From positions 310,001-374,000 of the forward strand of contig JASTWF010000259.1 of NCBI GenBank assembly GCA_030390025.1: 64,000 bases of DNA. The letters are read 5' to 3'. Made by a program: the position numbers and the translations under genes. Each line of letters begins with the position of its first letter. Positions within the stretch are counted from its first letter, which is position 1. Below, in pieces: positions 2,027 through 28,674 of this stretch. The notes beneath the pieces are model-generated. The model ran no database searches. It saw only the letters and a program-made list of their open reading frames with translations, and was not told where the DNA came from. The DNA comes from Squalus acanthias. Its lineage: Eukaryota.

Positions 2027-2235
2027 CTAATCACCTGCCCTTTCTCTGGTGGCTTTTGGGATTATAATTTCCAAAATGGGTATTTCTTCAGACAAACCCA
2101 GACCGGGACAGAGTGGGTGGATCTCGAGCGGAGGGCCATTTGTTGAGTCGATGAACTTCGCAGAAACGAGGATTTTCCGGGAAATTCGGGATGTGCGAGT
2201 TGAAGACTGTAAAGCTGAGTGCCGGTACTGCACCA
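2027..2235 (+). pseudogene. VNAR-type (IgNAR/NAR-TCR-like) variable segment pseudogene
   Basis: Frame A gives LITCPFSGGFWDYNFQNGYFFRQTQTGTEWV (Cys at 2036). After a frameshift at ~2120, frame B gives ISSGGPFVESMNFAETRIFREIRDVRVED-CKAECRYCT. This matches the VNAR pattern ISxGGRxVEsvN...IRDlRVED..YxCKA with no CDR2. The xATYY motif is deleted, leader and FR1 are missing, and an RSS follows directly. Confidence 0.8.
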
Positions 2236-2273
2236 CACAGTGATGGGCCTCGGCTTCCCGCGATACAAACACT
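2236..2273 (+). other. recombination signal sequence, 23-type (22-nt spacer), of the VNAR-type V
   Basis: CACAGTG (2236-2242) + 22 nt + ACAAACACT (2265-2273). Confidence 0.85.
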
Positions 2274-2455
2274 CTCACTGCAGATTGTCACAGAAATAAG
2301 TGAAGAAGCGGAGTTAATCTGCCGTTAAACCCACAGTTCCGCCTCGCACCGTTTGCCCCACAGTCTAGTTTATAATCAGATTGGATTATTGCAGTTAACA
2401 CCTTGAGTTTTGTAAATGTCGAGTGTGTGCGGATGGTGTCGTCTTTCCTGGGATT

Positions 2456-2750
2456 CTTAGAATCATAGAAATTTACGGCACAGAAGGAGGCCATTCGGCC
2501 CATCGTGACTGTGCCGGCCGAAATGAGCTCTCCAGCCTAATCCCACTTTCCAGCTGTTGTTCCGTAGCCCTGTAGGTTAGCGCACTTCAAATGCATATCC
2601 AAGTACATTTTAAATGTGATGGGGGTTTCTGCCTCTACCACCCTTACAGGCAGTGAGTTCCAGACCCCCATCACCCTCTGGGTGAAAACAGTTCTGCTCA
2701 ATTCCCCTGTAATCCTTCTACCAATTACTTTAAATCTATGGCCCCTGGTG
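2456..2750 (-). mobile_element. CR1 LINE 3' end fragment
   Basis: tagaatcatagaa tail, gaggccattcggccc 3'UTR and caccctctgggtgaaaa ORF2 end, shared with other copies in the window. Confidence 0.75.
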
Positions 2751-3348
2751 TTGTTTTAAACAATCTTCTGTTGTTCAGGTGAGTAGTAAAGAATTCAGTC
2801 TTATGGTTACAATCACTTTATTTTTTCTACTTTAACATAAAAGGCAATCTAAAAGCGGAGTGTAATTCCTTCAGAGGATAAGGCAGTTTACAAGTGGAGT
2901 TCTGTCAGCAGTTCCGAGTGTCGCCCTGCACTCCAGGAGGTTTCTCTCTCTTTTCTCTCTCTAATGATGCCAATCACCTTTTTTCGCTCTATATTGAATG
3001 AACTAAACATGAACACCTTTCAGAAGCTGAATTAGCCGAGTTTCATCCGCCAAAAAGCCCTACTTTTTTCCGATAGGTTACCTCTGAGCAAAGTGTTTTA
3101 TACCCCTCTTTGTCTCCTGGCTTCATCTTCGGGCCCTTGCTATCTCCTTACCTTTCCTTATATGTTCTATGCCCCTTATCAATTCCCTCACACGACGTAA
3201 TGGTTTGGTGTCAATGAATGGCGATTGGGAATGACTGACCCCAGTTACAAGTCCCCAACACCTGATGGGATCCTGTTCTAACAGCTGGAACCGGGAACCG
3301 CGGTCCCCGCCGTGTAACTAATGTCCCCCCATCTCACCGAGTCCCGGG

Positions 3349-3376
3349 GGATTTGATGCTGACTTGAAACACTGTG
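3349..3376 (+). other. degenerate 12-RSS 5' of the J-like segment
   Basis: GGATTTGAT (6/9 match to GGTTTTTGT) + 12 nt + perfect CACTGTG (3370-3376). Confidence 0.6.
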
Positions 3377-3436
3377 TTTACTGGGGTTATTGTGATTCTG
3401 TGGATGGATCCGGGACGGTAGTGACTGTCACAGCAG
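3377..3436 (+). pseudogene. NAR-type J segment, possibly D-J fused (YWGYCDSVDGSGTVVTVTA)
   Basis: Open 60-nt segment with a GxGT motif lacking the W/F, as in NAR J (D-G-S-G-T-V-V-T-V). Ends in a phase-1 donor G|GTAAGT. Called a pseudogene only because its partner V is broken. Confidence 0.75.
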
Positions 3437-3936
3437 GTAAGTGACTCCAAACCCCGTCGTGTCACAGACTGTCCCGGTTAATGTTCATCGTCAGTTTATT
3501 GTTGTGATCAGTATCACCTCAATCCCCTTCAAATTAAAACAGAGCGGTTTTCTTAGGGTGGTTTCATTGCAGTTTTAGATTGGGGAGCAGAATAACAACC
3601 GGGGTCGAGTCCGGAGAGAGGTAGTGTGAGACCCCACACGGAGCAGGCAGTCTGGGGGGTTTTACCCCATCTGGAGCATCATTGGTTTAACGGGGACCTC
3701 GGGGGATCCAATGAATATCCCGGAGTCTCACTCTGATCCCCAGTTGGTTTAAATGAGCGCCGATTGTCGACACTTCGGCCTCCGCTCTCGGTGTTAACCG
3801 TGACTGAGGGAGCTCTGCCTGTCCCTGTGAGCAGGACAGGGGGTCACAGAGCTCCGTCCTTGGCAGGAGATTCCAGTCCGAGCCGGGCAGTAGCAATGAG
3901 GTACCGGGAGATTGAACCCAACACTACAGCGGACCT

Positions 3937-4200
3937 TATACAAAAGCAAAATACTGCGGATGCTGGAAATCTGAAAAAAAACAGAAAATGCTGGAAATGC
4001 TCAGCAGGTCCGGCAGCATCTGTGGAGAGAGAAACAGAGTTAACGTTTCAGGTCGATGACCTTTCGTCAGAACTGGAAAAAGCTGGAGATGGAACAGGCA
4101 GGGAAAGGGGGGAGGGGAGGAAAGAACAAAAGGGAAGGTCTGTGATAGGATGGAAGGCAGGAGAGATTAAGAGAGGAAAGGGATGATGGTAATGGGACAA
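3937..4200 (-). mobile_element. Penelope-like pLTR fragment (second family)
   Basis: aaaatactgcggatgctggaaatctg... terminus, purine-rich body and a hammerhead motif on the minus strand. Confidence 0.6.
4038..4074 (-). ncRNA. minimal type I hammerhead ribozyme motif
   Basis: Minus strand reads agtt-CTGACGA-a-aggtc atc gacct-GAAA-cgt-t-aact. Confidence 0.7.
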
Positions 4201-4211
4201 GTTCACTGCCT

Positions 4212-4952
4212 TCCGATTCCTGCAGCGGCCCGTCCGGTTCCTGCAGCCCGATACCTACAGCGGCCGGTCCGATACCTGCAGCCCGACACCTACAGCGGCC
4301 CTTCCGATTCCTGCAGCCCGATACCTGCAGCGGCCCGTCCGATACCTACAGCGGCCGGTCGGATACCTACAGCAACCCGTCCGATACCTACAGCGGCCGG
4401 TCCGATACCTGCAGCCCGATACCTGCAGCGGCCCGTCCGATACCTGCAGCCCGATACCTGCAGCGGCCCGTCCGATACCGACAGCGTCCCGTCTGATACC
4501 TACAGCGGCCGGTCGGATACCTGCAGCGGCCCGTCCGATACCGACAGCGGCCGGTCCGATACCGACAGCGGCCGGTCCGATACCGACAGCGGCCGGTCCG
4601 ATACCGACAGCGGCCGGTCCGATACCGACAGCGGCCGGTCCGATACCTACAGCGGCCAGTCCGATTCCTGCAGCGGCCCGTCCGATACCGACAGCGGCCC
4701 GTCCGATACCGACAGCGGCCCGTCCGATACCGACAGCGGCCGGTCCGATTCCTGCAGCGGCCCGTCCGATACCTGCAGCAGCCCGTCCGATACCTACAGC
4801 GGCCCGTCCGATACCCGCAGCGGCCCGTCCGATACCTACAGCAGCCCGTCCGATACCTGCAGCCCGATACCTACAGCAGCCGGTCCGATACCTGCAGCCC
4901 GATACCTGCAGCGTCCCGTCCGATACCTGCAGCGGCCCGTCCGATACCTGAA
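4212..4952. repeat. GC/CpG-rich minisatellite, 21-bp unit (cagcggcccgtccgatacctg) with 13-bp variants
   Basis: Direct tandem repeats that explain the SGPSDTD-repeat ORFs. Confidence 0.95.
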
Positions 4953-5186
4953 GCGGCAGAAAAACTGGAGCACAACATGGCGGGGCTTCAGATACAAGAG
5001 TTCCGCCTGTAGGTCTAGATGGCATTTCATTATTGGGCACTCAGTGACTGAAATTAATTGTATTGTATCTGACATTTATTCCAATTGCCTTTGTACAAAC
5101 ATTTTTCACCATGTTTCTCGTCTAAGTCGAAGTATAAAAGTTTTGCACTAAAAACACTTCTATATTTTTATATTGTTAGATATTTC

Positions 5187-5465
5187 CTAATAAATCAATA
5201 GTGAATTCAGGAGGAACTTCTTTACCCAGAGAGTGGTCAGAATATGGAACTCGCTACCACAAGGAGCAGTTGAACCGAATAACATCGATACATTTAAGGG
5301 GAATCTAGATAAGTAGGTGAGGGAGAAAGGAATAGAAGGATATGTTGATGGAGTGAGATGGACTAGGGGTGGGAGGAGGCTCGTGTGGAGCAGTAATACC
5401 GGCATGGACCGATTGGGCCCAATGGCCTGTTTCTGTGCTCTGCATTCTGTGTGATGCTGTGTAAT
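5187..5465 (+). mobile_element. CR1 LINE 3' end fragment
   Basis: aacttctttacccagagagtgg (NFFTQRV) followed by 3'UTR. Confidence 0.75.
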
Positions 5466-6214
5466 ATTTAATGTTCATGTTTGAGAGATCGGATTGCAGT
5501 AATTTATCTGTATCCCTGGTTACTGTTAACTGAAACAACACTGGGCAGTGAGCGAGTGAGGGCGAGGTTCTAATGTTCCTATAAAGGAGAGCAGGAACAC
5601 CCGAGGGAACAAGTACAGACTGGAGGGAAGCCCATTTAGAACCAGCAAGAAATCATTCACCGAAAGGGAGAGAAATATCGGACTTCACCGGCCGGGCGGG
5701 GGTGTGGAGACACCGGTCTCTGGGCCGTTCAAAGCACAATCCGACACCGGGGCAGTGAGATTTACTGGAGGGACGGGCTGCGATTGGGAACCGGCCCTTT
5801 TCTCAGCTTTGGATTTCTTACACTCCTGAGAAAAGACAGCAGCAGCAATCCACACATTTCTGGAAAGATAGAACAGGCGGGGTTCTTTTGTTTGGAAAAG
5901 AGAAGAAAACGAGGAGACCTGATGGAGGTGATTAAAATTAGGCTGTAACTATTTGTAACACCAATGTTCTGATTGGTCCCCTTGGAGGACAAGACCAGAT
6001 TTCTGATTGGGCCCTTTGGCGGACAAGACACGCCCAGCAGTTTGTCTGGAATGTGTAATTAGATCCCGCCTGCCTGAGTAATCAAGATCTTTGCAATGTG
6101 TAATTTGATTCATTCATTGACAGCCAGGCTACAGAGCTCACAGGGCCAACATTACTGCTTTCAGAGAACAGACAAGACTCACCCTCCCGGGTTAGGAGAA
6201 CTCACACTGCCGAC

Positions 6215-6510
6215 TTAGATAGGAAGGAGTGAGGCCATGCAGGGATTTCAACATGAGGATGAGAATTTTAAAATCAAAGTGTTGGTGGACAATATTCCAC
6301 CTAATTATTTTTGTGGGGGGTGGGGGGTGTATGCGGTCCCTTTAACGGGCTGTGCCGGACCTCCAGACAGCTGCGTGGCCGCACAGGGGCGCTGGGTGAA
6401 TGGGACTTGCTCCGTGTTAGGATACAAGCAGCAGAGTTTTGGATGAGTTCAAGTTCATTGCGGGTGGAATATGGGAGACTGCCCAGGAGAACATTGGAAT
6501 AATTGAGTCC
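6215..6510 (-). mobile_element. L2-type LINE fragment
   Basis: LNYSNVLLGSLP...LELIQNSAACILTRSK is the L2 ORF2 C-terminal motif. A related copy lies at ~34320-34620. Confidence 0.65.
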
Positions 6511-6556
6511 GGCATATAACACATAAATATAATGTTATGCAAGTTCCAGACCTTAA

Positions 6557-6975
6557 CACGGTGGCATAGTGGTTAGCACTGCTGCCTCACAGCGCCAGAG
6601 ACCCGGGTTCGAATCTGACCTCGGGTGACTGTCTGTGTGGAGTTTGCACATTCTCCCCGTGTCTGCGTGGGTTTCCTCCGGGTGCTCCGGTTTCCTCCCA
6701 CAATCCAAAAATGTGCGGGTTAGGTTGATTTGGCTATGATAAATTGACCCTTAGTGTTAAGGGGGGATTAAATATGTGGGGTTATGGGGATAGGATGGGA
6801 TATGTTAGGGGGAATTAAATACGTGGGGTTACGGGGGTAGGGTGGGATATGTGTACTGTGGGGATTAAAGCAAGGACAGGGTACTGGATTTGGATGATCA
6901 GCCATGATCGTATTGAATGGTGGAGCAGGCTCGATGGGCCGAATGGCCTACTCCTGCTTCTAGATTCTATGTTTC
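6557..6975 (+). mobile_element. V-SINE (HE1-like) with tRNA-derived head and CR1-like tail
   Basis: A/B boxes (ggtggcatagtggttagc...gggttcgaatc) and V-domain tggagtttgcacattctccccgtgtctgcgtgggtttcctccggg. Confidence 0.8.
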
Positions 6976-7532
6976 TTTTCTCCCCGAGTTTCTGACCTTC
7001 TCCCCCCTCCGAACCCCTCCCTCTCCCCTCGATCCCCTCTCTCCTCTCCCCCCGATCCCCTATCTCCTCTCCCCAGATCCCCGCTTCGATCCCCTCTCTT
7101 CTCTGACATTGCGATCTGACTGGGATTACAAACTCCTGTTAGGTGCCAATTATGGCTGCATGAGATAGTAAGGCTGGAAAAACAGCACCGCCGAAGGTCC
7201 GCTTTGATTCATTATTCTCTTGTTCTTTCGAGCCCTAGTTACAGAGGGACAGTATTTGGGGTAAACGCACGGATGTCCAGCATTCAACCAAGGATGGCAG
7301 TCAAAATTTTCGCCTCCCAATATCATTATCCTCTGCAAGTGTTCGGGTCCACCGCCACCCCTGGCCCGTAAATCCCGCCCACTCGTTGCGCCATCGGCAA
7401 TTAGAACCAAATTCGAGCGCTCCCCAAGACTACCCCTTTGATTCCCTCTCCCCCGCGCCCCCCCCCCCCCACCCCCCACCACCGCTTCGTTCCCCTGCTA
7501 CAAATACTTGAACATGGTGGGGATTACAGACA

Positions 7533-7574
7533 CACAGTGATACAGAGCACAGGGAGAGAAGGTGTACAAATATT
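7533..7574 (+). other. orphan V-type RSS-like element with over-long (26-nt) spacer
   Basis: CACAGTG atacagagcacagggagagaaggtgt ACAAATATT. Confidence 0.45.
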
Positions 7575-8338
7575 CTGCACGGATGTATTCTCAATTCATC
7601 TTAGAATTTTAACGCACAGAAACAAGTGATAAGCCCATCAAGTCTGCACTTTCCTTCCCGCTCTTCACACAATTTAATAGTTATCTCTTTCCAGCCCCCT
7701 ATCCAATTACCCTGTTAAAATAATTCCTGCAGATATTCCACATTTTCCCCTCATTCAATGGAAAGAATTGTTTTTTTCACCATATAAATGAATCTTTTGC
7801 CGAGTCATATTTCACACTAGGGGTTATATTTATTGTCCGCCTGTTTCCACAAGGACCAGTAGAGTTTCTTCTTTCCTTTTCTTTGGTTCAATCCGTCTTA
7901 CACCGATTGGGCTGATGAGTGGTCTCCACCTCCTGGGATTTCACGGATTCGGTGTCCAATCTGCTCAGAGATTCTCTCCGCTCAGCAGAGCACCCGCAGT
8001 CTGTCCGGACCAACAACCCGGCCAGCTCTCGGCTGAAGGAGGATGGGTTTGGATTCAGTGAGTTAATGACTCGGCCATGGAGGGCTACGGCTCCCACAAT
8101 TCACAGCGGCAGTGAACAGGCCCATTGTGACACAGGCCGTGCTGCACTCTGGGAGAACTGTCCACACATGCGCAGCTCACCAACCGCTTTAATGGCAACG
8201 TTTTTGTTCTCTCGCGCGCCAAACTTTCAATTTTATCGATTAAGATCAAACGGTTATTTTGATGGAAAATGAAATACATTTTATTTTCAATCGAGCCGTT
8301 TTACTTAAATAAACAGCAGACATGCGCAGCGTTTCAAC

Positions 8339-8520
8339 GTCACACCAATATGGTCGACTGGACGTCACACAACACGGCCGACTGCTCGTCAAACCAACAT
8401 GGTCCATGATGGTCACATCAACATGGCCGATTGTATGTCACACAAACATGGTCCACGATCGTCACACCAACATTGCCCTGCAGTTGATGACGCCACAATC
8501 CATCAGCACGTCACAGCAAC
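8339..8520. repeat. degenerate ~24-25 bp tandem repeat (gtcacaccaacatggtc...)
   Basis: About 7 units starting gtcaca/gtcaaa, several containing caacatgg. Confidence 0.75.
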
Positions 8521-9644
8521 TTTATTGGCTGTTTCCCCCATTGATTCAGGGTCAGGAGATCACCGGCCGTCTCCAGCTTCCGCTCAGAGCTAAATAGCCC
8601 CAGTTTGCTGCCCCTGTGACCCGTGACTCAGTCCTCTGACCCGGATTGTGGGTGGGCGGGGGTGCGGCAGCACGGAGCCTCTTAAACGGGCCCTGCAGTC
8701 CATGAGAATCACCGAGCCCGGAGTCAGTGAGAGCCTGGGAACAGGGCAGAGAGACGAGGGTGATATAAGAGGAGATGGCGGCCCCGGATAGGGGAGTGGT
8801 GAGAGATTGTAGTAGAGACTGAGTTTAAACACCAACTCCATACATTCCCAATCTCCCTTCTTCCCTCTCTTAACCCGATGTCATATTCAACTACAGGAGA
8901 CCTCACGCCTGAATTGCAGGAGTTTCTAGGAAAAACAAAACCACATAGAAGGAAAATGCTGGAAGATACTCGGGCCTGGCCAGAAACCTCTGGAGATGTT
9001 CAGGTGGCACGGAGACACCGAACTAATCTGATGAGACGGTGAAGGATGTGGAGAGAAAGTTCAAGGAAACAGGGAGCAAAGATCTGAAGGTCACTGCTGA
9101 TCTCTGGTGGTGTTCAGTGAGTTCAGGGAGATGGTATAAGAGGGAATGGAGCAGAGCAGGGAGAAATGTTGTCAGGAAAACAGGAGACAGAGGGCCAGGG
9201 TTAATGGGTGTAGCTGAGATTGGAAAAGGCTTGGAAGTGGTTACCCCAGTGCAGGACCTACTTTTCTCCTTGGCCTGTGTGAACCATTTGAACTCGGGTC
9301 TCCTTTAAAGCGGCTAATTCAAAACAAAAATACATCCCACTGGTGCCCACCCGAGAGGAGGGCTCCACTCGCACACCTGGCCTGAACAAATCTAAAATTA
9401 TATTCCATTAGAATTGGATTGTATCACAACCTTTATCTAATTGTACCCACCGGGCGCAGAAGTCTCCAAATGTGTCTGTGGACATCGCGAGATCCCTCAT
9501 CTCCTCTCCCTCAAATACTGTCTAAAAGCTGGAGAACGTGTGTGTATAACAGAACAGGAGGAAAGAGGCTGTGTGTCAGATAGGCCCCAGGTTCTGGGAA
9601 TCATCCCCAGGGTTTGTGCTCCCTGGTGAGTCTGTGTCAGATAT

Positions 9645-9772
9645 CTAGCCCGTGTTGTACCTGCCTTGGGAATGTTTGATGGGACAGTGTAGAGGGAGCT
9701 TTGCTCTATCTAACCCGTGCTGTACCTGCCCCGGGAGTGTTTGATGGGACAGTTCAAAGGGAGTTTTACTCT
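9645..9772 (-). repeat. two units of the 67-bp satellite
   Basis: Reverse complement of the unit seen at 22765-23410. Confidence 0.85.
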
Positions 9773-10149
9773 GCCATGTGTTGTTCTCTATCAGGCTGTG
9801 ATGGAGCAGAGCATACAGCAGTGCTTGTTAATAGAACCTGGCATGTGACTGTGACAGAGCATAATATTGGAAGAGACTGCGAGGTGAGCCTGGTCGTTGT
9901 GCAGTCATTCCGCCTCTGGGTCTTGACATGAAAAGGCAGGGGTAAAGGTGTCGTTACTCTGATGGAACACTGGGTGGCGCAGTAGCTGCTTATCCGAAGG
10001 GACTTGGGTTCAAACACAACCCAGACAGGACGGGTGAAAAATACTGTCAGGGAAATAAAGCAAAGTGTGATAGGGAAAATGGAGCGGTGTGGAGGGGCCT
10101 TGGCGGAAGGAATTCAGCAAAGTCCAAGTAGTCCATTTGTCATTCCAGA

Positions 10150-10155
10150 TTTATT
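10150..10155 (-). terminator. candidate polyadenylation signal for membrane IgM
   Basis: AATAAA on the minus strand ~460 nt after the TM2 stop. Confidence 0.55.
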
Positions 10156-10611
10156 AACAATTTTACAGAGAACAATTTACAGAGAAGTTTTTAAAAAGTG
10201 AACACAAAGTGAATATAAAAACTGAGCGTCACATTGAGACCTGAACACAGGCGGTCTGAGCTGCCAGTTATCTGTACAACTGTAACAGACACCAGGGAGA
10301 GAAAACAGGGGCTCAGCATAAAGGGAAGGGAACAATTGTCAATTACGAATGAGAAAAGTGACTTATTTACACATGAAATATTCAAACAACGGTGAAACTC
10401 TGAGATACATTTCCATTATAGCCACGATGATCTCACACATTTCAAACAGAGAGACGGAAATCCCGGTTCTGATTTTCTCAGCTACAGATTCGGATCTATT
10501 AACTGAAGGCATTTGACTCTGAGAATCACCAAGATGATATATTTTATTTTCATGACACAGAGATGTTAATAAACAGATGAGGAAAATCCACGGCGTCCGA
10601 AATTCAACCGT

Positions 10612-10620
10612 TCACTTGAC
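10612..10620 (-). CDS. IGHM: IgM TM2 exon (VK-stop)
   Basis: ttttacag|GTC AAG TGA completes the KVK cytoplasmic tail. Confidence 0.93.
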   Translation of the reverse strand, partial: VK

Positions 10621-10760
10621 CTGTAAAAGAGGGATAAAAGAATGAAGCAGAGATTTAGTGGTTTGGGGCATTTATCTCAGGGTTTTTATCAATGAAACTT
10701 TTAGAGATTTGTTAAACCGCTTCAGTCAGATCGAAGTGTGAGTGGATTGAATCTTCTCAC

Positions 10761-10888
10761 CTTCACTAGAGTGACGGCAGCGCTGTAGGCCATGCTCAGG
10801 AAGAACAGGATGATGAATGTGGAAGCGGTTGTCCAGATGTTGCCGCTCTCTTCCTCATAGTCTTCAATCAAGAATTGGTCTGAGGAAT
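10761..10888 (-). CDS. IGHM: IgM TM1 exon
   Basis: tag|(D)SSDQFLIEDYEEESGNIWTTASTFIILFFLSMAYSAAVTLVK|gtgag: acidic spacer and CART motif, phase 1 to 0. Confidence 0.96.
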
Positions 10889-11529
10889 CTACGGGGAAGT
10901 AGAGGCGGAAATATATTCAGATCCTTTATTAATCCAAGATATCATAATATTATTATATATTCTCTTCTTTTCCTTAAGGTATAAGTTTGTTCCCTAATTT
11001 AATTTTCAATGTATATCTTGTGTTAAGTTAATCACTCTCAGCAATCTATCTCTGTTCCTAACTCCACAGTCGCTCTTTCTTTAGAATCCTCCTGTAGTCC
11101 GTGTTGGAAAAAACGACAGTTTTTTCTTCAATGTCACACGCTAATTGATTTTGCATCAATTTCGTACAATCTATCATTCGGGAATAATATGATAAAATAT
11201 CGAGGGAGGTTTACTGATTGATATCGATTATTTTAACGATAGGTTTAGATAGCTACTTATTTGGAGACTGTCAAGGGGTCTGGGTAAGAGATCAGATGTG
11301 ATTTATAATCTTGTTTATTTATTTGTTATGGCAATGCTCTGAACATAATTAACTTGTATCAGTTTCCAACAAGAACATTGATTCAGTGTATGTGTAGGAC
11401 CAGAATAGAGAAATGTGAGATGTTATGGTATCAGGAATTATTCATTCAGAACAATCGTTGGAAACTGTGTTCGTTCAAAAAGTGCATTTTAATTCTACAA
11501 TCGTCTATAGCCTGAGGTTTTTTCGCGCA

Positions 11530-12646: not shown

Positions 12647-13877
12647 CTCCCCTCTCTCTGGTGGGGGAGTGGGGGGTACAGTGGGTTAACAATTGCCCTT
12701 TCTCCTCTCTCTGGTGGGGGAGTGGGGGGTACAGGGGGTTAACAATTACCCTTTCCCCTCTCTCTGGTGGGGAGTGGGGGGTACAGTGGGTTAACAATTG
12801 CCCTTTCCCCTCTCTCTGGTGGGGGAGTGGGGGTACAGTGGGTTAACAATTACCCTTTCCCCTCTCTCTGGTGGGGGAGTGGGGGGTACAGTGGGTTAAC
12901 AATTGCCCTTTCCCCTCTCTCTGGTGGGGGAGTGGGAGGTACAGCGGGTTAACAATTACCCTTTCCCCTCTCTCTGGTGGGGGAGTGGGGGTACAGTGGG
13001 TTAACAATTACCCTTTCCCCTCTCTCTGGTGGGGGAGTGAGAGGTACAGTGGGTTAACAATTGCCCTTTCCCCTCTCTCTGTTTCCCCTCTCTCTGGTGG
13101 GGGAGTGGGAGGTACAGTGGGTTAACAATTGCCCTTTCCCCTCTCTCTGGTGGGGGAGTGGGGGTACAGTGGGTTAACAATTGCCCTTTCCCCTCTCTCT
13201 GGTGGGGGAGTGGGGGTACAGTGTGTTAACAATTGCCCTTTCCCCTCTCTCTGGTGGGGGAGTGGGGGTACAGTGGGTTAACAATTGCCCTTTTCCCTCT
13301 CTCTGGTGGGGGAGTGGGGGTACAGTGGGTTAACAATTACCCTTTCCCCTCTCTCTGGTGGGGGAGTGAGAGGTACAGTGGGTTAACAATTGCCCTTTCC
13401 ACTCTCTCTGTTTCCCCTCTCTCTGGTGGGGGAGTGGGAGGTACAGTGGGTTAACAATTGCCCTTTCCCCTCTCTCTGGTGGGGGAGTGGGGGTACAGTG
13501 GGTTAACAATTGCCCTTTCCCCTCTCTCTGGTGGGGGAGTGGGGGTACAGTGTGTTAACAATTGCCCTTTCCCCTCTCTCTGGTGGGGGAGTGGGGGTAC
13601 AGTGTGTTAACAATTGCCCTTTCCACTCTCTCTGGTGGGGGAGTGGGGGTACAGTGTGTTAACAATTGCCCTTTCCCCTCTCTCTGGTGGGGGAGTGGGG
13701 GTACAGTGTGTTAACAATTGCCCTTTCCCCTCTCTCTGGTGGGGGAGTGGGGGTACAGTGTGTTAACAATTGCCCTTTCCCCTCTCTCTGGTGGGGGAGT
13801 GGGGGTACAGTGTGTTAACAATTGCCCTTTCCACTCTCTCTGTTTCCCCTCTCTCTGGTGGGGGAGTGGGGGTACAG
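12647..13877. repeat. 52-bp minisatellite in the CH4-TM1 intron
   Basis: Unit ccctttcccctctctctggtgggggagtgggggtacagtgggttaacaattg, ~22-23 near-identical copies. Confidence 0.97.
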
Positions 13878-14310: not shown

Positions 14311-14702
14311 TCATTGACAAGAATTGACGGTGTCCATCAGAACAAGGGAAATGTTGACAAAACTGGGTTTACCGCTGGATTTATTAACCGTTCTGTTGAT
14401 GATCTTCAAGGGGATCGCTTCATGTCCCACCACACAGGAGTAAGAAGCGCCGCTGGCCCACTCCTCCGCTGCAATGGATAACAGGCTGTACATGAAGAAG
14501 GAACTGCTGCCGTTCTCCGCCATCACCTCGGTGTTCTTGTAGTTGCCGGAATTCACCGGCTTGTCATTGACGGTCCACTTGACGAAGATCTCTCGGGGGG
14601 AGAAACCTCTCACTAAGCAGGTGAGGCTGACGAACCTCTGAGCGGAGACTTCTTCTGCCGGGGGCAGGAGGACAGACACGGACGGTTCCCGCGGATGTTT
14701 AG
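14311..14702 (-). CDS. IGHM: IgM CH4 exon plus secretory tailpiece (14311-14372)
   Basis: cag|(A)[17 protein letters not shown]...[17 protein letters not shown]...YSCVVGHE. Internal donor AGCG|GTAAA at 14373/14372. Tailpiece [20 protein letters not shown] has the N-glycan sequon and penultimate Cys. Confidence 0.98.
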
Positions 14703-19070: not shown

Positions 19071-20859
19071 CTGGGAAAGAATGGCCCATTGAACAAGTTA
19101 GATTCGGTAATCCGTGCTTATAACATAACCAAACAACTCGAAATGTGACTACAGGATGAACTAATTCCATCATTTGCCGAACAAAACCTAGATCAGCATT
19201 TGAGTTTCTGTGAATTGTGAGACCCGACGTGAAATGCCTTCATGTGACTCCAGTCTTGTACATAAGAAAAGTCAGGAGTCTGAAAGGGGCATTCTGTCCA
19301 TGAAGCCCCTTTATATCGAGTGAATGCCGGAATATTGTATCGTGGACTTCCTCCAGCTCTTGATCCCCTGTTATGGAACACACCTCACACCCCAACCACA
19401 TTCACATTAGATTCTTTCACATTCTGTCCACTGAGCTCCTCCCTACATCCTTTTGCTGTCAGCCTCTTATTATCAGCACAGAATCAGGCCATTCCATGAT
19501 ATCAAAGTGTCGTCATCTCTCCATTGTAAGATGCTGCCTTAAAACCTACCTCTTTGACCAAGCTTTTGGTCAACTGTCAGAGTAAATACCAACCATACTA
19601 AAGAATAAAATGATATCTCCTTATGTGGCTCGGTATCAGATTGTATCTGCTGACGCTCCTGTGAATCGTCTTGGGACGTTTTACTACGTTAAAGGCGCTA
19701 TATAAATGCAAGTTGTTGTTTTCAGGGGATAGACTTGTTTGAATAGCGGTGGGATTAGTTCTCCTAATCACACAACTCCTACAGCTAGATCTACTAGTTG
19801 TATTACCTTTAAAACACATCCCAGCATGTTTATAAAGCATGACCAGAATTATAAAATAATACAACTTTACACCACAGAAGGAGGCTATTCGGCAAATCAC
19901 GCCTCTGAAAGATCTCTCCACCAATCCCGTGCACCTTCCAATTCCCAATCTTCTCAACTGTACAATTTTATCGAGCTATTATGGATTCTGCATGCAGCCC
20001 TCTTTCTGATAGGACATCCCATGTTCAACAGCCCCCTGTGTAGAAAAGTAGAATAATACCCTCTCCCTTCATTCTGTTGCTGCTGATTTTCAATCAGTGC
20101 CATTTACTCACCAACTCACCGACCCGGGAAATATGTTTCCCGAATCCCTTCATAAAACCCTTCATAATTCCAAACCCCTCTATCAGACCTCATCTAAATC
20201 TTCTTTGTTCCCATGACAATAAAGGACGTTTACAATAAATGGTTGAAGTCTCGTTTAAAATGTGAACTGAATAATTCAGCGCACAGATTTGAATAGGGAA
20301 CTTTTGCACAGCCTGGTTTCTAAGATTCAAGCTTTAGATGAATCGGGATTGATTCGAGTTCTCTCTTTCCTTCTCAGAATTGGAGGAAGAGCGATGCAGT
20401 GTGACTTGAGCTCTATCCCATTCTACTGAATGGATGTCTCCTGACTTTCCTCCTCCCACTCACCCAAATAAATAAACCGAATTAAATACGATTCCCAAAG
20501 CCGGTTATATGGAACGATGCTCTTTAAATGCTCCATTGCATTTTCCAAATTACTTTCCAACCTCCCACCAGTGAGAACAGGCGCTGCTTTCTGGGTCGTT
20601 ACAGTCACTTCTTGTTGCTGTTTGTACCGAAAATAATCTAAACATCGGGACAGGTTTCTTCTCTAAATATCTAATATTGGCAATCCTTAAACATTATAAA
20701 TCGATTGGTTATCAGCGGGTTCTATGTAAGGAAGGACAAACAATAACTAATGTGCTGACTGCTGATGTGGGAAACTCTGCCTTCTGGTTTGTGCGGATAA
20801 CTCAAACACCTGCGGCTTATTGGTCAGATACTGAAAGCTCGGTCTACAGTGTGAAGTAA

Positions 20860-22020
20860 CAGAGAGGGTTGATGATGGTGTTGCAGTAGATGTTGTACAT
20901 ACATACTTTCAAATGGCATTTTATAAAGTATCTCATAAAAGACTTATTCGGAAAATAGAAACACATTAAAGGATGGAGGTAACTTGGGTATGTAATTGGC
21001 TGAGGGAGAGGAGGCAGAGAGTAGTGGTGAACGGATGTTTTTCTGACTGGAGAGAAGTATGCAGTGGGGTCCCCCTTGGGTCGGTATTAGGACCATTGCT
21101 TTTCATGTTTTATATATCAATTACCTGGACCTGTTTATAGGGAGTATAGTTTCCAAGTTCGCAGATGATGCAAAACTTGGCAACGTAGTAACTCGGGAGG
21201 AGGATAGCAGTGGACTTCAGGAGGATATAGACAGACTGGTGAAATGGGCAGACATGTGGCCGATGCAGTTTAATGCAGATAAGTGTGAAGTGATGCACTT
21301 TGGGAGGAACAACAGGGAGACACAGTATAATCTAACTGGCACTATTTTGTGGGGAATGCAAGAGCAGAGGGACCTGTGCTGCATATTCACAAATCTGTGA
21401 AGGTGGCAGGGCAAGTTGATCAGGTGGTTACGGACGTGTGTGGGATACTTGTCATTGTAAAAGGAGCATTGAATAGAAAAACAAGGAAGTCCTGCTAAAC
21501 CTTTACAAATCACTGTTTAGGCATCAGCTGGAGTAGTGTATTCAATTCTGACAATCACAATTTAGAAAGGATGACAAGGCCTTGGAGAGGGTTCAGCCGA
21601 GGTTGACCAGGATGATGCCAGGAATGAGAGACTTCAGCTATGCGGAGAGATTGGATAAGCTGGGATTGTTCCTTGGAGCAGAGAAGGTTAAGGGGAGTCC
21701 TAATAGAGGTGTTCAAAATTGTGAGAGGTTTTGTCAGAGCATGTCGGGAGGAACGGTTTCCTCTGGTGAGTATGTCGGTAACCAAAGGTCACAGATTTAA
21801 AATAATTGCCAAAAGAACTAGAGGGGAAATGAGGGTAATTGTATTTCAAACAGAGGGTTGTTAAGTTCCGGAATGCACGAGGCAACTGGACATGTTCTTG
21901 AAGAGACTCAGTGGAGGGTTACAAGGAAAAAGCTGGGATTTGATTGGACAGCTCTTTCAGAGCCAGCACAGGCAAGACGGGCCGAATGGCCCCTTCTGTG
22001 CTCTGAGATTCTGTGATTCT
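20860..22020 (+). mobile_element. decayed CR1 LINE (RT to 3'UTR)
   Basis: SKFADDAKL, KWADMWPMQFNADKCEVMHFG and ERVQ.R.TRM motifs with frameshifts. Confidence 0.9.
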
Positions 22021-22764
22021 ACACGGCTCAGCGGAATTAGTTCTTCCCGATTTAATGGAAGGAAACGCTTCATAATGTTGAACACCTCTATCAGATCTAT
22101 TTTATTGTTTGTTATAATACAAGAGGATATTTAAAATAAAGGAACTGAGGAATTTGACACAAATGATTCAATCGGATACCGTCACAGAGTCTTAAAGCTT
22201 ATTGTGAATGACGACTCATCGCAGGCTGACTGTTTCTCTTTAAATGTTTCACAGAGGTGCGGCTCAGTGACTGTGAGCCTTGTGCTGTGACCCAGTCCAA
22301 TAGCTGCACCTCACCCGAGTTTGTCCCGGCCTGGTACCTTTTTAAAAACAATTGAACAAAATAATGCTTTCAAACATAAGGTTCCCATGATGGTTATTTG
22401 GAGCGGGAGTCTCGACATTCTCCATTTAAATTGTCAAAATAACTCCCAGCCTCCCATCAGATCAGAACAGGCGCTGCTTTCTGGAGCGTTACCGTCACTT
22501 CCTGAAACTGTTTGTTCTGAAAGTGAGCTCAGGAACAGGCCAATCTCATTCAATCATTATCTGATACTCAAAATGTTTAAAGTTTATCAATTCATTAAAA
22601 AATGGGCAGTTTTATTTGCAATGAGGTTAAACTCAATTAATGCGCGGTTGTTTCATCGGAGCAATGGAAAGTTTTATATTTATATATCTGGCTGGAGAAC
22701 TCACACTTTATTAGTTGGATGCACATTAAGGTTCCTTGAACAACACGGGACAAAGCACTCACAG

Positions 22765-23410
22765 ATCTGTTACAGTACAGATACAGAGTAAAGCTCCCTC
22801 TGCACTGCCCTGCCATCCGCTGTACCCTCAGGTATAGGAAGGGATTGATTCCGAGCAACGCCAAGTCTGCACAGCACTGTCAAACACTCCGGGTAAGGCA
22901 CCGTACTGGTTAAATACAGAGTAAAGCCCCATCTACATTGCACAATCAAACACGCCCAAGGCAGGTACAACACGGGTTAGATACAGAGTAAATTCTGCCT
23001 CTACACTGAACCATCAAAGATTCACGGGGCATAACAGCACGGGTTAGATACAGAGTAAAGCTCCGTCTACACTGTCCCATCAAACACTCCCAGGGCAGGT
23101 ACAGCACGGGTTAGATACAGAGTAAAGCTCCCTCTACACTGTCCCATCAAACACTCCCAGGGCAGGTACAGCACGGGTTTTGATACAGCATAAAGTTCCC
23201 TCTACACTGTCCCATCAAACACTCCCAGGCCGGTACAGCACGGGTTAGGTACAGAGTAAAGCTCCCTCTACACTGTCCCATCAAACACTCCCAGGGCAGG
23301 TACAGCACGGGTTAGATACAGAGTAAAGCTCCCTCTACAATGTCCCATCAAACACTCCCAGGGCAGGTACGGCACGGGTGAGAAACTGATTCAAGCTCCT
23401 TCTACAGTTT
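22765..23410 (+). repeat. 67-bp satellite, ~9 units, in the J-CH1 intron
   Basis: Unit gggcaggtacagcacgggttagatacagagtaaagctccctctacactgtcccatcaaacactccca, period 67 (23041 to 23108). Confidence 0.95.
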
Positions 23411-26400
23411 GCCAGAAGTGTTTCTGAAATGCTCCTTCTGATTGTCACAAACTGGGTTACTGATCCCATTTCTGAGACGCCTCCTCAAACTTAAAGTCAA
23501 ACTATCGCATTTCTCACAGATACAAGCTTCTCAAATAACTGAGTCGAATTGTACTCCATGAAACACAAGAGAACAAACCAGCAGGTTTACAACCAGTCAG
23601 GAGGACTCCTGATTCTCACACAGTGAGCAGGCGCACAGAAACAGAACAGACACAAACGGTGCAACAATCGTGCTCTCAGCAGATAGATCTGTTCACTCTG
23701 TCAATTTCAATGAAGCTGATTTCTAATTGATCTCTTGTCAATTTCCGACCACCTCAAGTCTGCACGTTTTCTGAAATTAAACTGATATTAATTTGAAAAA
23801 CTCTCTTCGACTTCCAACCATTTCTCCCTCCCTGTCTACAATCTTACAAACAAATAAGATTTAGCTTCCCTGAAAACTAGTTTACTGAAATAATTCACAT
23901 TCCAGGGTAATTTGCTGCATAAAACAGGGACTCCGTGACAGAGTAAGAATTTAACGAACTAGGAACCACTGGGTTAATATAATTTCATAATTAAATATAA
24001 CCGGTAAAATCATCGAGGCAAAACACGAAGTTAATTCATTAAAATCTGCGGCGACACCTTCTCGAGCTGAGCACAGCTGAGTAAGACATGTATTGTTTCT
24101 AAATTAATTTTAGACATAATTTAAAATTCTCTCCAACCCTTGAGATTTTGCAGTAACTGTAATCCTGTCCAGTATACAACGCAATTGTGGGAGGTCATTT
24201 ATGTTTAATAAATTCGCACTCATATTATATTCTAAGTTAATATTGATGTTAGCTGCATTATAATAAAATTAGTTGATATTAATTTTAATCCTGTTTCTGC
24301 CTGGTAACTTGTGAACTTATAGGGTTTCAATTAAATTAACATGACACTTATCAATATTAAAATATTAAAAATCATATTAATAGATAAAGACATTCAGACA
24401 AATATATTACTTTTACTTAAATCAAATCACATTTGAATAGTTTAAAATGGTCACTAACTTCTAATACATTCCCGCTCTCTATCTACACTCTTGTAAACTC
24501 TGCATGTTTCTGAACTCTCTGATACAACATAAACTCCATCTTTTCTCAGAGTGGATTTCACATGATGGATTTAGGAGTGGACTATTTTAAATAGTTCAAA
24601 GTCTGGCCGTGGTCACATCTCACTAACTACCGATGGACTGTAACACCGTGTGTTTACTAAAGCAGGGCTCTCGAGTTTAAACATTGTCCTCAATCTTAAC
24701 TATAAATACTATTTTCGTGAATTAAAAGACAACCGGCCAGTTTGCAGTCAGTAACAGAGACTCCGCTATTTAATAACAGACAATCTTTTTATACTTTACT
24801 CCCGTAATTCACACAATTCCCGTAAATTAATTATTAAATATATTCTGCTATTTATTGAAAATCAGTTCCAGAATGATCAGTGTAAAACTGGCGGAGAACA
24901 AATCAATCAGACCATCTGCGACACTGAAATTTAATGAGCAAATGGAGGAGAGATTTTGTTGATCAATTTAACATTAATGAGAATTAAACATAACTCTCAG
25001 ATGTAATCTGTTCACTGTCTATAATTCTATCCCGTATACAGCACAGCTATGGGAGACAGGATGTTGTTATTAAATTCAAAACTAATATTAACCTTTTGTA
25101 ATTAAATTAATCTGCTTGAATGTCAATGGGTTATTTGTCTGTCTCCAGCCTTACGCAGTCTGCACCTTCCGTGAATTTAAATAGAATCATATGAACAATT
25201 CTTTGACTGCCAGCGACCGCTCAGCCTATGATCTTACAAACTGTTTAAGATTAGTTTAGTGATAATTGTCTCGCTATCAAACAACAAATAATATTGAAGG
25301 AATAACATGGTTTCCGCTGCACAGTAAGAATTTAATAACCCGGCAGATTTATTACATTTACAAACTGCAATTTATACTCGCATTTAATGCATAATTAAAT
25401 ACAATCTGTCATTCATCTGTGTGAAACAGGGAGATAACAATTAATTTCAAACCCTCATTAAACTGAACACTGCGGTGGAATCAGTCTGCTGTTATTAAAA
25501 TAATTTCAGACATAATCAGAAATTGTCTCCAGCCTCTAAAATTCTCCGCTCAGGTTAATTGTGACCAGTGCACAGCAGAATTGTGGAAGGCGAATAATGT
25601 TTAATACATTAATATTAATACTACAGCATATTTAGTGATATTGGGCAATATTACCGCATTATAATCGTTTGAGTTATATTAATTTAACTCTCCTTCAACC
25701 TGCAAATTGTTAATTATATAATTCGTAATTTCAGTAACATTTCACCTATTAAATGTGAGCACCGTAAACCATAGATTAATAGTTGAATCTGTAATTCTCA
25801 CTTAAATAAAAACATGCATTAAATTATTTTTAATGATTTTTGATTTATAAAACCTACTTGTTGTCTGCCTACAATCATCTTTCAAACAGTTTTAAACAGA
25901 TCAGAAAACCTGCAGCAGTTCGATGTCACCGAGATTAAACATTGCAGAAACTCCAAACAGTTTCACAAACTTTAGCTTATTCAAAGTAACCCAGGCACAC
26001 ACTCTCCTCAGCAGATAAACAGCAAATCACATCACTGAGGGGCTGAATCCCGCAACAGAACGTTTTGTGGAGAAGCAGCTTCATTCTATAAACCCTTTCA
26101 GCAGAATCAAATGTAACATTGCAAAAAAATCTCAATACAGAATCCAGCGAACCCATCTATCACTGAACGAATTAATTATTGAAATAAACAAAAATATAAA
26201 ATAATGACAGCGGAATTGTGAGTAGACGGATCAGGTTTAATAAATTACTATTGATATCGGATATTGTTGTAACATTGGGTGATATTACTACATATGATAA
26301 CTTTATTTATATTAAGTTAAATCTCATTCAGGCTACAAATGTGTTAATTATGTAATTATTAATTACAGTAACATTTCAGGTATTGAATATGACCGTTGGT

Positions 26401-26893
26401 GAACATTAGATTAATAGATGATAATGTAAATATCACAAATAAAAATACATTAAAATATCTTAAGATTATTTTTGACCGCTAGAGCTTTCTATTTTCTGCC
26501 TACAATCTTATTTCAAACACATTTAGTCACATAATGTTTACATTTGATCAGAAAACCAGCAACCATTAGATGTCACCGAGATTAAACATTGTAGAAACGC
26601 CAAACAGTTCAACAACCGTTGGGTATTTAAAGTAACCCAGGCTCACAGTCTCATCAGCAGATAAACACCAAACCACATCAATCAGGGGCTCAATCCCTCA
26701 ATAACACTTTTTCTGAAGAAACTGTTTAAATCTATTATCCCTTTGCAGCAGAATCAAATGAAACAGAGCAAAAAATCTCAATACAGAATCCACCGAACCC
26801 AAGTTTCAGTGAATGAATGAATTATTGAAATAAACAGAAATATAAAATAAAGGCACGAATACAACAGTTGCTGAAAGAGTGAATGTTTCTTAC

Positions 26894-26941
26894 CTGCAGT
26901 CACCGTCACCATGGTGCCTTGGCCCCAGTAGTCGAGTTCGT
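26894..26941 (-). CDS. IGHJ: IgH J segment (ELDYWGQGTMVTVTA)
   Basis: WGQG motif, phase-1 donor G|gtaag and an upstream 23-RSS. Confidence 0.97.
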
Positions 26942-26980
26942 CACAGTGTTCCATTCCCCGGGCTGGGTCACACAATAACC
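26942..26980 (-). other. JH 23-RSS
   Basis: Plus strand CACAGTG (26942-26948) + 23 nt + ACAATAACC (26972-26980). Confidence 0.95.
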
Positions 26981-27304
26981 GGCTCTGTGTAAAACAGACA
27001 GAAATCCAACATTAGTTTAAATATTCACATCCCAGAGGAAAAGTAAAGTCACGATGGATCTTCATAAAATGATAAATGTGTCAATGGATACTTTTCACTC
27101 TTTATAAATTCCCTGATCCTTTATATTTCACAGAGTAACCCTTGAACAGTTAATGAAATCATCAACTGATCAATGATTAATTATCACAGTTTATCCATAT
27201 TAAACTGTGCTAGTGGACAGTGCTGGACACAAATAGGACTTCACTGCATCTACAGTTGGATTGTGAAAGCGACACTGACCCAGACTCACACAATTAGTGC
27301 TGAG

Positions 27305-27373
27305 GGTTTTTGTATTGACAGTAACTGCTGTGCCACCCAGTATACCACAGTGAGACACGCCGTGCCAAATACT
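27305..27373 (-). other. D2 segment (27333-27345, gtatactgggtgg) flanked by 12-RSS on both sides
   Basis: 3' RSS CACAGCA-12-ACAAAAACC (27305-27332); 5' RSS CACAGTG-12-CCAAATACT (27346-27373). Confidence 0.95.
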
Positions 27374-27687
27374 CCAGCGGACTGTTAACTGTAAAATACA
27401 GAGATGAAATTCCACAGCGCTCCTAAAAACCCTGATTCCGACTCCCCTAAGAGTGCATCAGTGAGATATTTCAGTTTGTGCTGGTCATTATCTTTATAAA
27501 AGGGATTGGAACACTTCTCAAGCCTCTGTGCAGATTTAGCACGACAATCAACACTAATAAAGCAAAACACTTTTATAAATTGTTATAAATCTATGTTACT
27601 TTTACCCATTATTTTAATTTAAGCCTCATTTTCTCCGCCGCTCCTGCCGTGGCAGTGATCGCAGGTGTGAGCAAACTCCCTGTCTGG

Positions 27688-27767
27688 GGTTTTTGTATGA
27701 GGAGCTCGCTCTGTACAGCACCGTGACCCCCTGTTGTACCACAGTGACAGGAACCCGCACAAATACT
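27688..27767 (-). other. D1 segment (27726-27739, gtacaacagggggt) with 5' 12-RSS and 3' 22-RSS
   Basis: 3' RSS CACGGTG-22-ACAAAAACC (27688-27725); 5' RSS CACAGTG-12-ACAAATACT (27740-27767). Confidence 0.95.
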
Positions 27768-28157
27768 GCACTCACTCCCTGTTCAGTGCCGCCTCTCAAC
27801 ATTCACTTCAAATAGACATTCACTTCTGATCTAGTTTAGAATTTATCCAACAGTTTACACAACGTAATAGAAAGTGAACACAGTCCCAACCAACTCCCTC
27901 CAGGTATCAATCATATTGAAACGAGCATTAACTCCAGCTCTGCCATTGCTGACACTGTGAACAGTAAACATGAGCACAGCCAAAACCTCTCCTCAGTACA
28001 TCGGTTACTGTGCTAGATTTTTACCATTGAATTTTCAGTGTGTTGATTCAGTAAGAAGCGGCGTGTGGTCTGGTTCTGAGCAATGCTGTTAAGATCGCGT
28101 TTAATACAATTACTGACCGTCAGTTTATGATGGAAGTTGTTGAATGTCCCCTCGTTC

Positions 28158-28196
28158 TGTTCTTGTACGGGTCCAGCCCTGGTTCCTCTCGCTGTG
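28158..28196 (-). other. VH 23-RSS
   Basis: CACAGCG + 23 nt + ACAAGAACA. Confidence 0.93.
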
Positions 28197-28501
28197 GTCT
28201 CTTGCACAGTAATAGATGGCGGTGTCTTCGGTCCTCAGGTTCTTCATGTCCAAAGCGAAGATGCTGTTTGAATTGTCTTTGGACGCAGTAAATCGGCTCT
28301 GGATCCCTGGGGCGTAATACTCGTTCGATGAACTGTGATAGTTAACCAGCCACTCCAGCCCCTGTCCGGGAACCTGTCGGACCCAGCTCATCCAGGTGCT
28401 ACTAAGAGTGAACCCGCTGGTTTTACAGGTCAGTCTCAGGGAGCCTCCGGGACTCCTGGTCTCTGCCTCTGGCTGAGTCAACACGACATCCGACTGGACA
28501 C
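28197..28501 (-). CDS. IGHV: IgH V segment exon
   Basis: cag|(G)[13 protein letters not shown]...LTCKTSGF...[13 protein letters not shown]...RFTASKD...[10 protein letters not shown]; open frame with canonical Cys/Trp/Cys. Confidence 0.98.
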
Positions 28502-28628
28502 CTGTAAAAACAATCAAAAACCCCGAGGATTAATCCTGGTGAAATGATTCCTGACTCTGTAACATTCCAGAGAGAGACTAACACTGAGACAGTAACAGTG
28601 AGAGACTTGGACAATAAAAACTACTCAC

Positions 28629-28674
28629 CGGATAAGAAAGCCAGCAACAGACTGAGAGAAATCGCCGACCTCAT
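28629..28674 (-). CDS. IGHV: IgH leader exon (MRSAISLSLLLAFLS G)
   Basis: 46-nt ATG-initiated hydrophobic exon, G|gtgag donor and a 127-nt intron to V. Confidence 0.95.

Follow-up and report, generated by a model that had tools for sequence, protein, structure and literature searches.

The window analysed here is a stretch of 64,000 nucleotides of the Squalus acanthias genome (assembly GCA_030390025.1, contig JASTWF010000259.1, positions 310,001 to 374,000 of the forward strand). It holds antigen-receptor segments on both strands: a germline IgM cluster on the minus strand (28674-10612), with all frames open and canonical splice sites, and a V remnant and a J segment on the plus strand. The features are listed below, with positions counted from the first letter of the window.

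1745-2035, plus strand: 3'-truncated SINE abutting the V remnant (alignment, self-BLAST)
2036-2235, plus strand: V pseudogene remnant assigned to the NAR family, 200 bases (translations)
2236-2273, plus strand: V RSS, with heptamer CACAGTG (2236-2242), a 22-base spacer and nonamer ACAAACACT (2265-2273)
3349-3376, plus strand: J RSS, with nonamer GGATTTGAT (3349-3357), a 12-base spacer and heptamer CACTGTG (3370-3376)
3377-3436, plus strand: J coding segment, 60 bases, open frame YWGYCDSVDGSGTVVTVTA, GT donor at 3437
4248-4957, strand not applicable: 21-base minisatellite, about 36 copies, 710 bases, within the 7-kb spacer between J and the IgM cluster
28674-28629, minus strand: IgM leader
28501-28197, minus strand: VH exon (Pfam V-set, 6.6e-16)
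28196-28158, minus strand: VH 23-RSS
27739-27726, minus strand: D1, with 5' 12-RSS at 27767-27740 and 3' 22-RSS at 27725-27688
27345-27333, minus strand: D2, with a 12-RSS on both sides (whole unit 27305-27373)
26941-26894, minus strand: JH, with 23-RSS at 26980-26942
19070-18771, minus strand: Cmu1 (Pfam C1-set, 3.5e-13)
18000-17689, minus strand: Cmu2 (Pfam C1-set, 9.9e-17)
15529-15221, minus strand: Cmu3 (Pfam C1-set, 1.2e-09)
14702-14314, minus strand: Cmu4 with secretory tail (Pfam C1-set, 1.8e-22), internal membrane-splice donor at 14372
10888-10761, minus strand: TM1
10620-10612, minus strand: TM2, ending VK-stop

The IgM cluster is complete, as the original prediction had stated: its exons are open and six of six expected RSSs are present. 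The standard RSS layout of shark IgM is Leader-VH(23) / (12)D1(22-23) / (12)D2(12) / (23)JH, and this order is found here, followed by Cmu1-4 and TM1-2 as in a shark IgM minicluster. The VH shares 78% identity with a VH of Heterodontus francisci, 77% with one of Chiloscyllium punctatum, and 73-74% with Scyliorhinus VHs. An RSS scan returned six sites with a perfect heptamer and an acceptable nonamer, five of which flank the V, J or IgM segments, while one (23619) flanks nothing. A hidden second V was sought at the RSS-like sites 23619, 35713, 63694, 16140 and 20853, and no V-like frames were found there.

The V remnant runs roughly from the first Cys and CDR1 to the end of FR3. It reads in two overlapping frames (2033-2143 and 2115-2234, here pieces A and B), with one frameshift near 2114-2123 in the translations and three Cys close to the 3' end. 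On its 5' side lies the SINE, with a self-BLAST match at 1832-2006, whose likeness in alignment to a second copy at 48140-47600 on the minus strand extends to about 2035 and then ends. Because SINE homology reaches the point where the V starts, the leader and FR1 are absent; the missing 5' half was also sought upstream (681-1840), where no FR1-like frame was found. The RSS on the other side has a perfect heptamer and a nonamer matching at seven of nine positions. The V remnant is dead and encodes nothing, in agreement with the expectation that the V is broken and its products non-functional.

Its family was assigned from piece B, for which all 12 PDB matches (phmmer, E<=10) are of the shark VNAR type, with E-values of 0.14-1.4, the best of them (0.14) spanning about 30 residues. 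These matches are in register with the remnant over the conserved FR3 block, whose last residue is the Cys immediately preceding the heptamer. More than 13,380 conventional V-domain sequences in PDB match the neighbouring VH, and zero of them match the V remnant. The distance from the position of the WYRK motif to the Cys is 44-48 residues, against 60 in the VH of the window, and is thus 12-16 residues shorter; a short domain without the C''/CDR2 stretch is a NAR trait. Taken as sequence evidence, this supports placing the V remnant in the NAR family, with a match that is weak in absolute terms. At the WYRK position the remnant has FFRQ, with no Trp. The canonical Trp of this motif is reported absent from NAR-TcR V (PMC1845163), and its absence here leans toward the NAR-TcR type, although it could also reflect pseudogene drift. 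The PDB matches cannot separate IgNAR from NAR-TcR, because PDB has IgNAR V and no listed match is named NAR-TcR.

Other searches with the V remnant gave no match. Pfam assigned no family to either piece, piece A had no PDB match, and piece B had zero matches in an exhaustive search against 1.84 billion representatives. A word-indexed protein search with the 70-aa frame containing piece B gave no candidate, and the ESM Atlas gave no lead (top score 0.77, unnamed clusters). A profile of 76 VH homologues, run against 1704 ORF pieces, found the IgM VH alone, the V remnant being absent among the best 30 listed, the last of which had an E-value of 26. A light-chain or TCR V was considered and rejected on the PDB result, all matches being VNAR-type. 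A decayed copy of the IgM cluster was likewise rejected, since blastn shows no similarity between the V/J flanks and that cluster.

The J segment lies 1.1 kb downstream of the V on the same strand. Its RSS nonamer matches at six of nine positions, and its translation ends in GSGTVVTVTA. At 60 bases it is longer than the JH of the IgM cluster (48 bases) and its 5' part looks D-like, so that it is possibly a germline D-J fusion. No RSS-flanked D segment was found between V and J (2243-3376) with up to two heptamer and up to four nonamer mismatches allowed. The PDB matches of the J are FR4 of heavy-chain V domains, and none of the 19 is a VNAR. The J therefore appears generically heavy-chain-like and its sequence does not allow a NAR type to be assigned, so that its earlier description as NAR-type is not borne out.

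From the J donor to the TM2 stop there are 7176 bases, tail-to-tail, which agrees with the claim that a plus-strand V(22-RSS) and (12-RSS)J lie about 7 kb past TM2 of a minus-strand IgM cluster. This spacer contains no recognizable partner for the pair. Outside the minisatellite, which makes up five further ORFs, none of the 14 plus-strand ORFs of at least 75 aa at 3.7-9.9 kb belongs to a Pfam family, C1-set included, and the only C1-set exons in the window are the four Cmu exons on the opposite strand. No V-set or VH-like ORF that could be a supporting V-delta was found on the plus strand at 3.4-10.4 kb outside 6623-6688 by Pfam or the VH profile, nor was any V-type RSS with a V-like frame found in the same interval. 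The minisatellite was considered as an RSS array and rejected, as it is not RSS-like. The idea of a NAR-TCR-like cassette thus stands in part: the V is of the NAR family, while the supporting V-delta that belongs to such a cassette was not found. Likewise, neither IgNAR C exons nor a V-delta lie beside the pair among the plus-strand ORFs examined, and the pair does not amount to an IgNAR cluster.

We interpret V and J as a decayed orphan pair of NAR-family segments, set tail-to-tail with an intact germline IgM minicluster whose last exon is 7.2 kb away, and we give this reading a probability of roughly 0.75. The pair is in our judgement an ordinary pseudogene relic. Its probable source is a V-(D)-J unit of the NAR-TcR type, an IgNAR minicluster being the less likely one. 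Its D segments may have been fused or lost through RAG activity in the germline, and the leader, FR1 and the downstream exons would have been taken away afterwards by deletions and transposon insertions. The surviving RSSs could still be cut by RAG, giving V-to-J deletion, V-to-D1/D2 inversion or VH-to-J inversion; none of these products would be productive, and partners 25 kb away should lose out to the signals that stand close together inside the IgM cluster. Joining in the germline and rearrangement within clusters have both been described in sharks (PMC4279169).

Three other explanations concern what the pair is and whether it belongs here. It is possible, if rather doubtful, that V and J are left from an IgNAR minicluster that kept its V and a germline-fused D-J, the five C exons being deleted or lying past an assembly error. 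The sole sequence matches are IgNAR V domains, the J is long with a D-like 5' part, and among the seven IgNAR clusters of the bamboo shark three are incomplete and some carry D segments that are already joined, with 22-base spacers also present (PMC8692893). Against this origin, the WYRK Trp is absent, no C1-set exon follows on the plus strand, and clusters of different IgH isotypes reportedly do not mix (PMC12227049). The adjacency of the pair to the IgM cluster is that of the assembly only, and a wrong join across the repeat-rich 3.5-10.4 kb interval, with its 710-base minisatellite and its SINE and satellite fragments, would make that adjacency an artefact. We consider this improbable: the best DNA sequencing runs do contain just 0.48 of the words sampled from 1990-3480, yet positions 1-30517 are free of N, the first N run starting at 30518, and neither composition nor sequence marks a join. 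That the V-like stretch is a chance ORF beside an RSS-like motif, and no V at all, is hardly credible. Every E-value does exceed 0.1, and matches in Pfam, the Atlas and the large library are absent; however, all 12 matches come from one rare family and stay in register up to the Cys that precedes a perfect heptamer, a 22-base spacer and a nonamer, and 1.1 kb downstream, also on the plus strand, lies a J that has a splice donor and a 12-RSS compatible with the V signal.

A further reading holds that the V/J cassette is, or was until recently, an active substrate for V(D)J recombination by inversion with the IgM cluster, mediating or recording an exchange of V domains between B- and T-cell receptors. 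The geometry put forward for it holds. The V RSS and the 5' RSSs of D1 and D2 are each found at higher coordinates than the coding end they adjoin. The topology of the inversion and the 12/23 compatibility (V to D1/D2, VH to J) are as claimed, as geometry only, and D1 begins precisely at the claimed break point of 27739. Orientation and compatibility are just what the reaction would need, and the heptamers are perfect. In addition, the layout resembles that of TCR beta/delta, where an inverted V also follows the C exons, and sharks are firmly known to trans-rearrange IgH V to TCR delta (both PMC12227049). Yet no product is possible from a V without leader, promoter or FR1 and with a frameshift, and shark IgH rearrangement is almost exclusively intra-cluster (PMC4279169). 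A signal-joint footprint is not above chance in the window (one match with two mismatches, equalled in 26 of 100 shuffles). The sequencing runs listed are in contig form, in which rare variants are dropped, and none with a meaningful share is recorded as RNA. We therefore regard this reading as very unlikely: with the V lacking leader and FR1 and frameshifted, there is no indication of inversion now or in the past, and the suggestion that it keeps a record of V-domain movement is, for this locus, conjecture. We hold it equally far-fetched that the NAR-type V/J, inverted as it lies behind Cmu, might be the fossil of a RAG-inversion plan able to bring a single-domain V onto an Ig D-J-C, the plan of an inverted V after C that TCR beta and delta retain. 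If it were, the locus would be a physical trace of a NAR V moving between TCR delta and IgH, and in Squalus acanthias or related sharks NAR-V/Cmu chains might still be produced wherever the layout survives intact.

Several known systems invite comparison with the decayed orphan pair. In the shark TCR delta locus, V-(D)-J cassettes of NAR-TcR were reportedly described by Criscitiello et al. in 2006. As in those cassettes, the V here is of the NAR family, lacks the WYRK Trp and lies in Ig/TCR-mixed territory, and the pair has a J of its own, whose splice donor is in the phase by which a J is spliced to the next exon (PMC1845163, PMC3457774, PMC12227049). The V of such a cassette carries a leader and an a-b loop Cys. 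The pair differs in having neither a leaderless supporting V-delta downstream nor a D, and in that its V is a pseudogene with the 5' half gone. With the IgNAR minicluster (V-D1-D2-D3-J-C1-5; PMC8692893) it shares a V that matches IgNAR V, 22/12 signals and a long J. It differs from that minicluster in lacking a free D (three are expected) and the five C exons with secretory and TM tails, in the absent WYRK Trp, and in lying beside an IgM cluster, outside the IgNAR group.

TRBV30/31 and TRDV3/5 are inverted V genes behind the C exons of TCR beta/delta, which are joined by inversion. The V remnant resembles the inverted V of these loci (PMC12227049) in its opposite orientation past the last C and in a 23-class signal facing the 12-signals of D. 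Joining to an IgM D would need inversion, because the V is opposite in orientation and lies beyond the last C exon. A functional inverted V is intact and expressed, and the TCR beta/delta genes are the locus's own; the V remnant, unlike these, is a truncated and frameshifted pseudogene of a foreign family with its own J.

A final parallel is with the stray V exons that in elasmobranchs occur from one IgH cluster to the next, in genomes where IgM, IgW, IgNAR, NARTCR V and TCR alpha/delta are linked (PMC12227049). Here too, a lone V segment adjoins an IgH minicluster in an Ig/TCR-linked genome, and the general Ig/TCR linkage invoked in the original prediction is already published in the same source. 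The stray V exons described there are of TCR alpha/delta type and intermediate, and a V of NAR type that has its own J and adjoins IgM does not appear in the text of its section 6. Little can be learned about mechanism from a locus with a dead V and no joint on record; as a marker, it allows other IgM clusters of the genome to be screened for a similar neighbour whose V is intact. Should the adjacency be real, it would be a further case of antigen-receptor segments of different families within RAG reach in sharks, the kind of mixed neighbourhood that has already been invoked for IgH-V/TCR-delta chimaeras and for the transfer of NAR V between TCR delta and IgH (PMC12227049).

In our analysis, the plus-strand NAR-family V remnant (2036-2235) and J most probably represent a dead orphan V-J relic that lies next to a working IgM cluster, a reading that we hold at about three chances in four. 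The original prediction was accurate in placing a V and a J beside an IgM cluster, and the parts and their signals were located as follows.

Features of the plus-strand pair and of the minus-strand IgM cluster
2033-2143, plus strand, frame A of the V remnant, ...CPFSGGFWDYNFQNGYFFRQTQTGTEW...
2115-2234, plus strand, frame B of the V remnant, GWISSGGPFVESMNFAETRIFREIRDVRVEDCKAECRYCT
2236-2273, plus strand, V remnant signal (perfect heptamer, 22-base spacer, nonamer 7/9)
3349-3376, plus strand, J signal (nonamer 6/9, 12-base spacer, perfect heptamer)
3377-3436, plus strand, J coding, 60 bases, YWGYCDSVDGSGTVVTVTA, then a GT donor
28674-28629, minus strand, leader
28501-28197, minus strand, VH exon, Pfam V-set 6.6e-16
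28196-28158, minus strand, VH 23-spacer signal
27739-27726, minus strand, D1, 12-spacer signal 5', 22-spacer signal 3'
27345-27333, minus strand, D2, 12-spacer signal on each side
26941-26894, minus strand, JH, 23-spacer signal
19070-18771, minus strand, Cmu1, C1-set
18000-17689, minus strand, Cmu2, C1-set
15529-15221, minus strand, Cmu3, C1-set
14702-14314, minus strand, Cmu4, C1-set
10888-10761, minus strand, TM1
10620-10612, minus strand, TM2

The germline IgM minicluster is complete, with every frame open and AG/GT borders at all introns, and its signals follow the textbook shark IgM layout. All four Cmu exons match C1-set (E 3.5e-13 to 1.8e-22). The DNA of the window comes from an elasmobranch; for the VH exon, identity is 78% with a Heterodontus francisci VH, 77% with a gene model of Chiloscyllium punctatum, and 73-74% with models of Scyliorhinus torazame. 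Part of the Cmu4-TM1 intron is occupied by a 52-base tandem array (12648-13842, ~22 copies, 89% matches), and 1.8 kb upstream of the leader there is the sole N run of the window, of 158 bases (30518-30675).

On the plus strand, the 200 bases 5' of the V signal read as the C-terminal half of a V domain, split over two frames by one frameshift near 2114-2123. Homology to another SINE copy in the window reaches ~2035, just upstream of the remnant, and then stops, so that the V is left without leader, intron, and FR1; no FR1 or leader frame was found farther upstream. Searched against all PDB sequences, frame B matched VNARs in four of four cases, and with three residues added all 12 matches at E<=10 were VNAR-type (11 named NAR or VNAR, and one 'Antigen receptor' with the same motif), although the E-values are weak (best 0.14). 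The alignment keeps register over a conserved block, I-S-x-G-G through V-E-D, and in HMMER the middle Cys (AEC) falls on the canonical one. As a control, the VH of the window had matches to 13,380 different PDB sequences (E<=0.001); conventional V domains are therefore plentiful there, yet none matches the remnant. In addition, the WYRK position lies 44-48 residues from the Cys in the remnant versus 60 in the VH, a short form as in NAR domains. In a profile of 76 VH homologues the remnant was not among the 30 matches listed (last E 26). Frame A had no match in PDB, nor did the remnant in Pfam, the ESM Atlas, a word-indexed search, or a search of 1.84 billion proteins.

The J begins 1141 bases downstream of the remnant, and no D-like segment was found between them, even at relaxed signal thresholds. 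A scan of the whole window for heptamers without mismatch that have an acceptable nonamer gave six sites, five of which flank annotated segments (the other, 23619, flanks nothing), so the signals are not background. The 12-base spacer sets this J apart from the IgM JH with its 23-base spacer. Its family cannot be typed from its sequence: of its 19 PDB matches (E 0.24-9.9), most are to FR4 of heavy chains and nanobodies, three are light-chain-type entries, one is unrelated, and none is a VNAR. The 5' part of this long J (3377-3405) has the run TACTGGG in common with D2 and TACTGGGG in common with the start of JH; these runs would fit a D-J or J-like fusion.

Two origins may be considered for the pair, a NAR-TcR cassette and an IgNAR minicluster. 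A NAR-TcR cassette requires that a supporting V-delta, without leader, follow the J, and an IgNAR cluster requires D segments and five C exons; none of these was found for the pair. Within the window, all 14 plus-strand ORFs of at least 75 aa at 3.7-9.9 kb, apart from five formed by a 21-base minisatellite, lack a Pfam family, and a VH profile run on 1704 ORF pieces of at least 25 aa outside 6623-6688 found the IgM VH only. Of the NAR or NAR-TCR-like cassette originally predicted, the NAR-family V stands, while the J is untypable and no V-delta was found. For IgNAR, bamboo shark is reported to have three of seven clusters incomplete, some clusters with pre-joined D segments, and 22-base spacers (PMC8692893). 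The remnant has FFRQ at the position of the WYRK Trp, and NAR-TcR V is reported to lack this Trp (PMC1845163). Its absence leans towards the NAR-TcR type, while pseudogene drift could give the same; overall, we consider NAR-TcR somewhat more likely than IgNAR.

The 7.2 kb from J to TM2 hold minisatellite, SINE and satellite fragments, and unique sequence; one satellite fragment (9637-9774) has as many as 207 matches across the window. Past the IgM cluster, 28.9-64 kb contain nothing but fragments of LINEs and satellite arrays with units of 27 and 67 bases. Of the 67-base arrays (22880-23406, 40091-46350, 52911-63840; 8 to ~70 copies), one is in the JH-Cmu1 intron, which is 7.6 kb long, and the remainder occupy most DNA upstream of the cluster. 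A LINE reverse-transcriptase ORF (36246-37895, 550 aa, RVT_1 4.7e-32) has 27-base minisatellites on its flanks (36266-36564, 37983-39381, 49425-50198; 11-52 copies) and runs through one of them. A near-identical frame of 93-95 aa at 46884-47168 and 60361-60639 indicates a duplicated segment, ~13.5 kb apart, in the satellite region. At the window start, an open frame of 220 aa (30-689) matches no Pfam family (E<=10) and looks like the endonuclease end of a retroelement of the Penelope type.

The original prediction also proposed V(D)J joining by inversion between the pair and the IgM cluster, and its geometry is correct. The V signal and the D1 and D2 5' signals each adjoin their coding ends on the side of higher coordinates, so that all three share one direction and would be joined by inversion. 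Inversion of 2236-27739 (or 2236-27345) would set D1-D2-JH-Cmu in sense behind the V, a 22/23 spacer pairing with a 12, and the VH and J signals are likewise of the same direction and compatible. Layout and signals permit the scenario, but it is otherwise unsupported and we regard it as very improbable: the remnant is unable to make a domain, signals within the cluster are 300-450 bases apart versus 25 kb to the foreign partner, and shark rearrangement is almost exclusively within one cluster according to a review (PMC4279169), which also covers RAG-mediated germline joining. A scan for fused heptamer pairs, the expected footprint of germline inversion, stood at chance level (one match, two mismatches; at least one in 26 of 100 shuffles). 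The match, a heptamer-to-heptamer-like string, lies between VH and D1 (27953-27966). Across 22 sequencing runs in contig form, the best contains 0.48 of the sampled words, those of two other organisms contain about a quarter, and those recorded as RNA at most 0.05.

We found no description in the literature, supplementary tables aside, of a NAR-type V and J inverted behind an IgM cluster. PMC12227049 has NARTCR V segments on its map, places TCR-type or intermediate-type V exons between IgH clusters, and proposes a move of NAR V between TCR delta and an IgW cluster. From the view of the IgM cluster, the plus-strand V is an inverted V past the C exons, and the TCR beta and delta loci are noted to have the same plan of an inverted V beyond C (PMC12227049).
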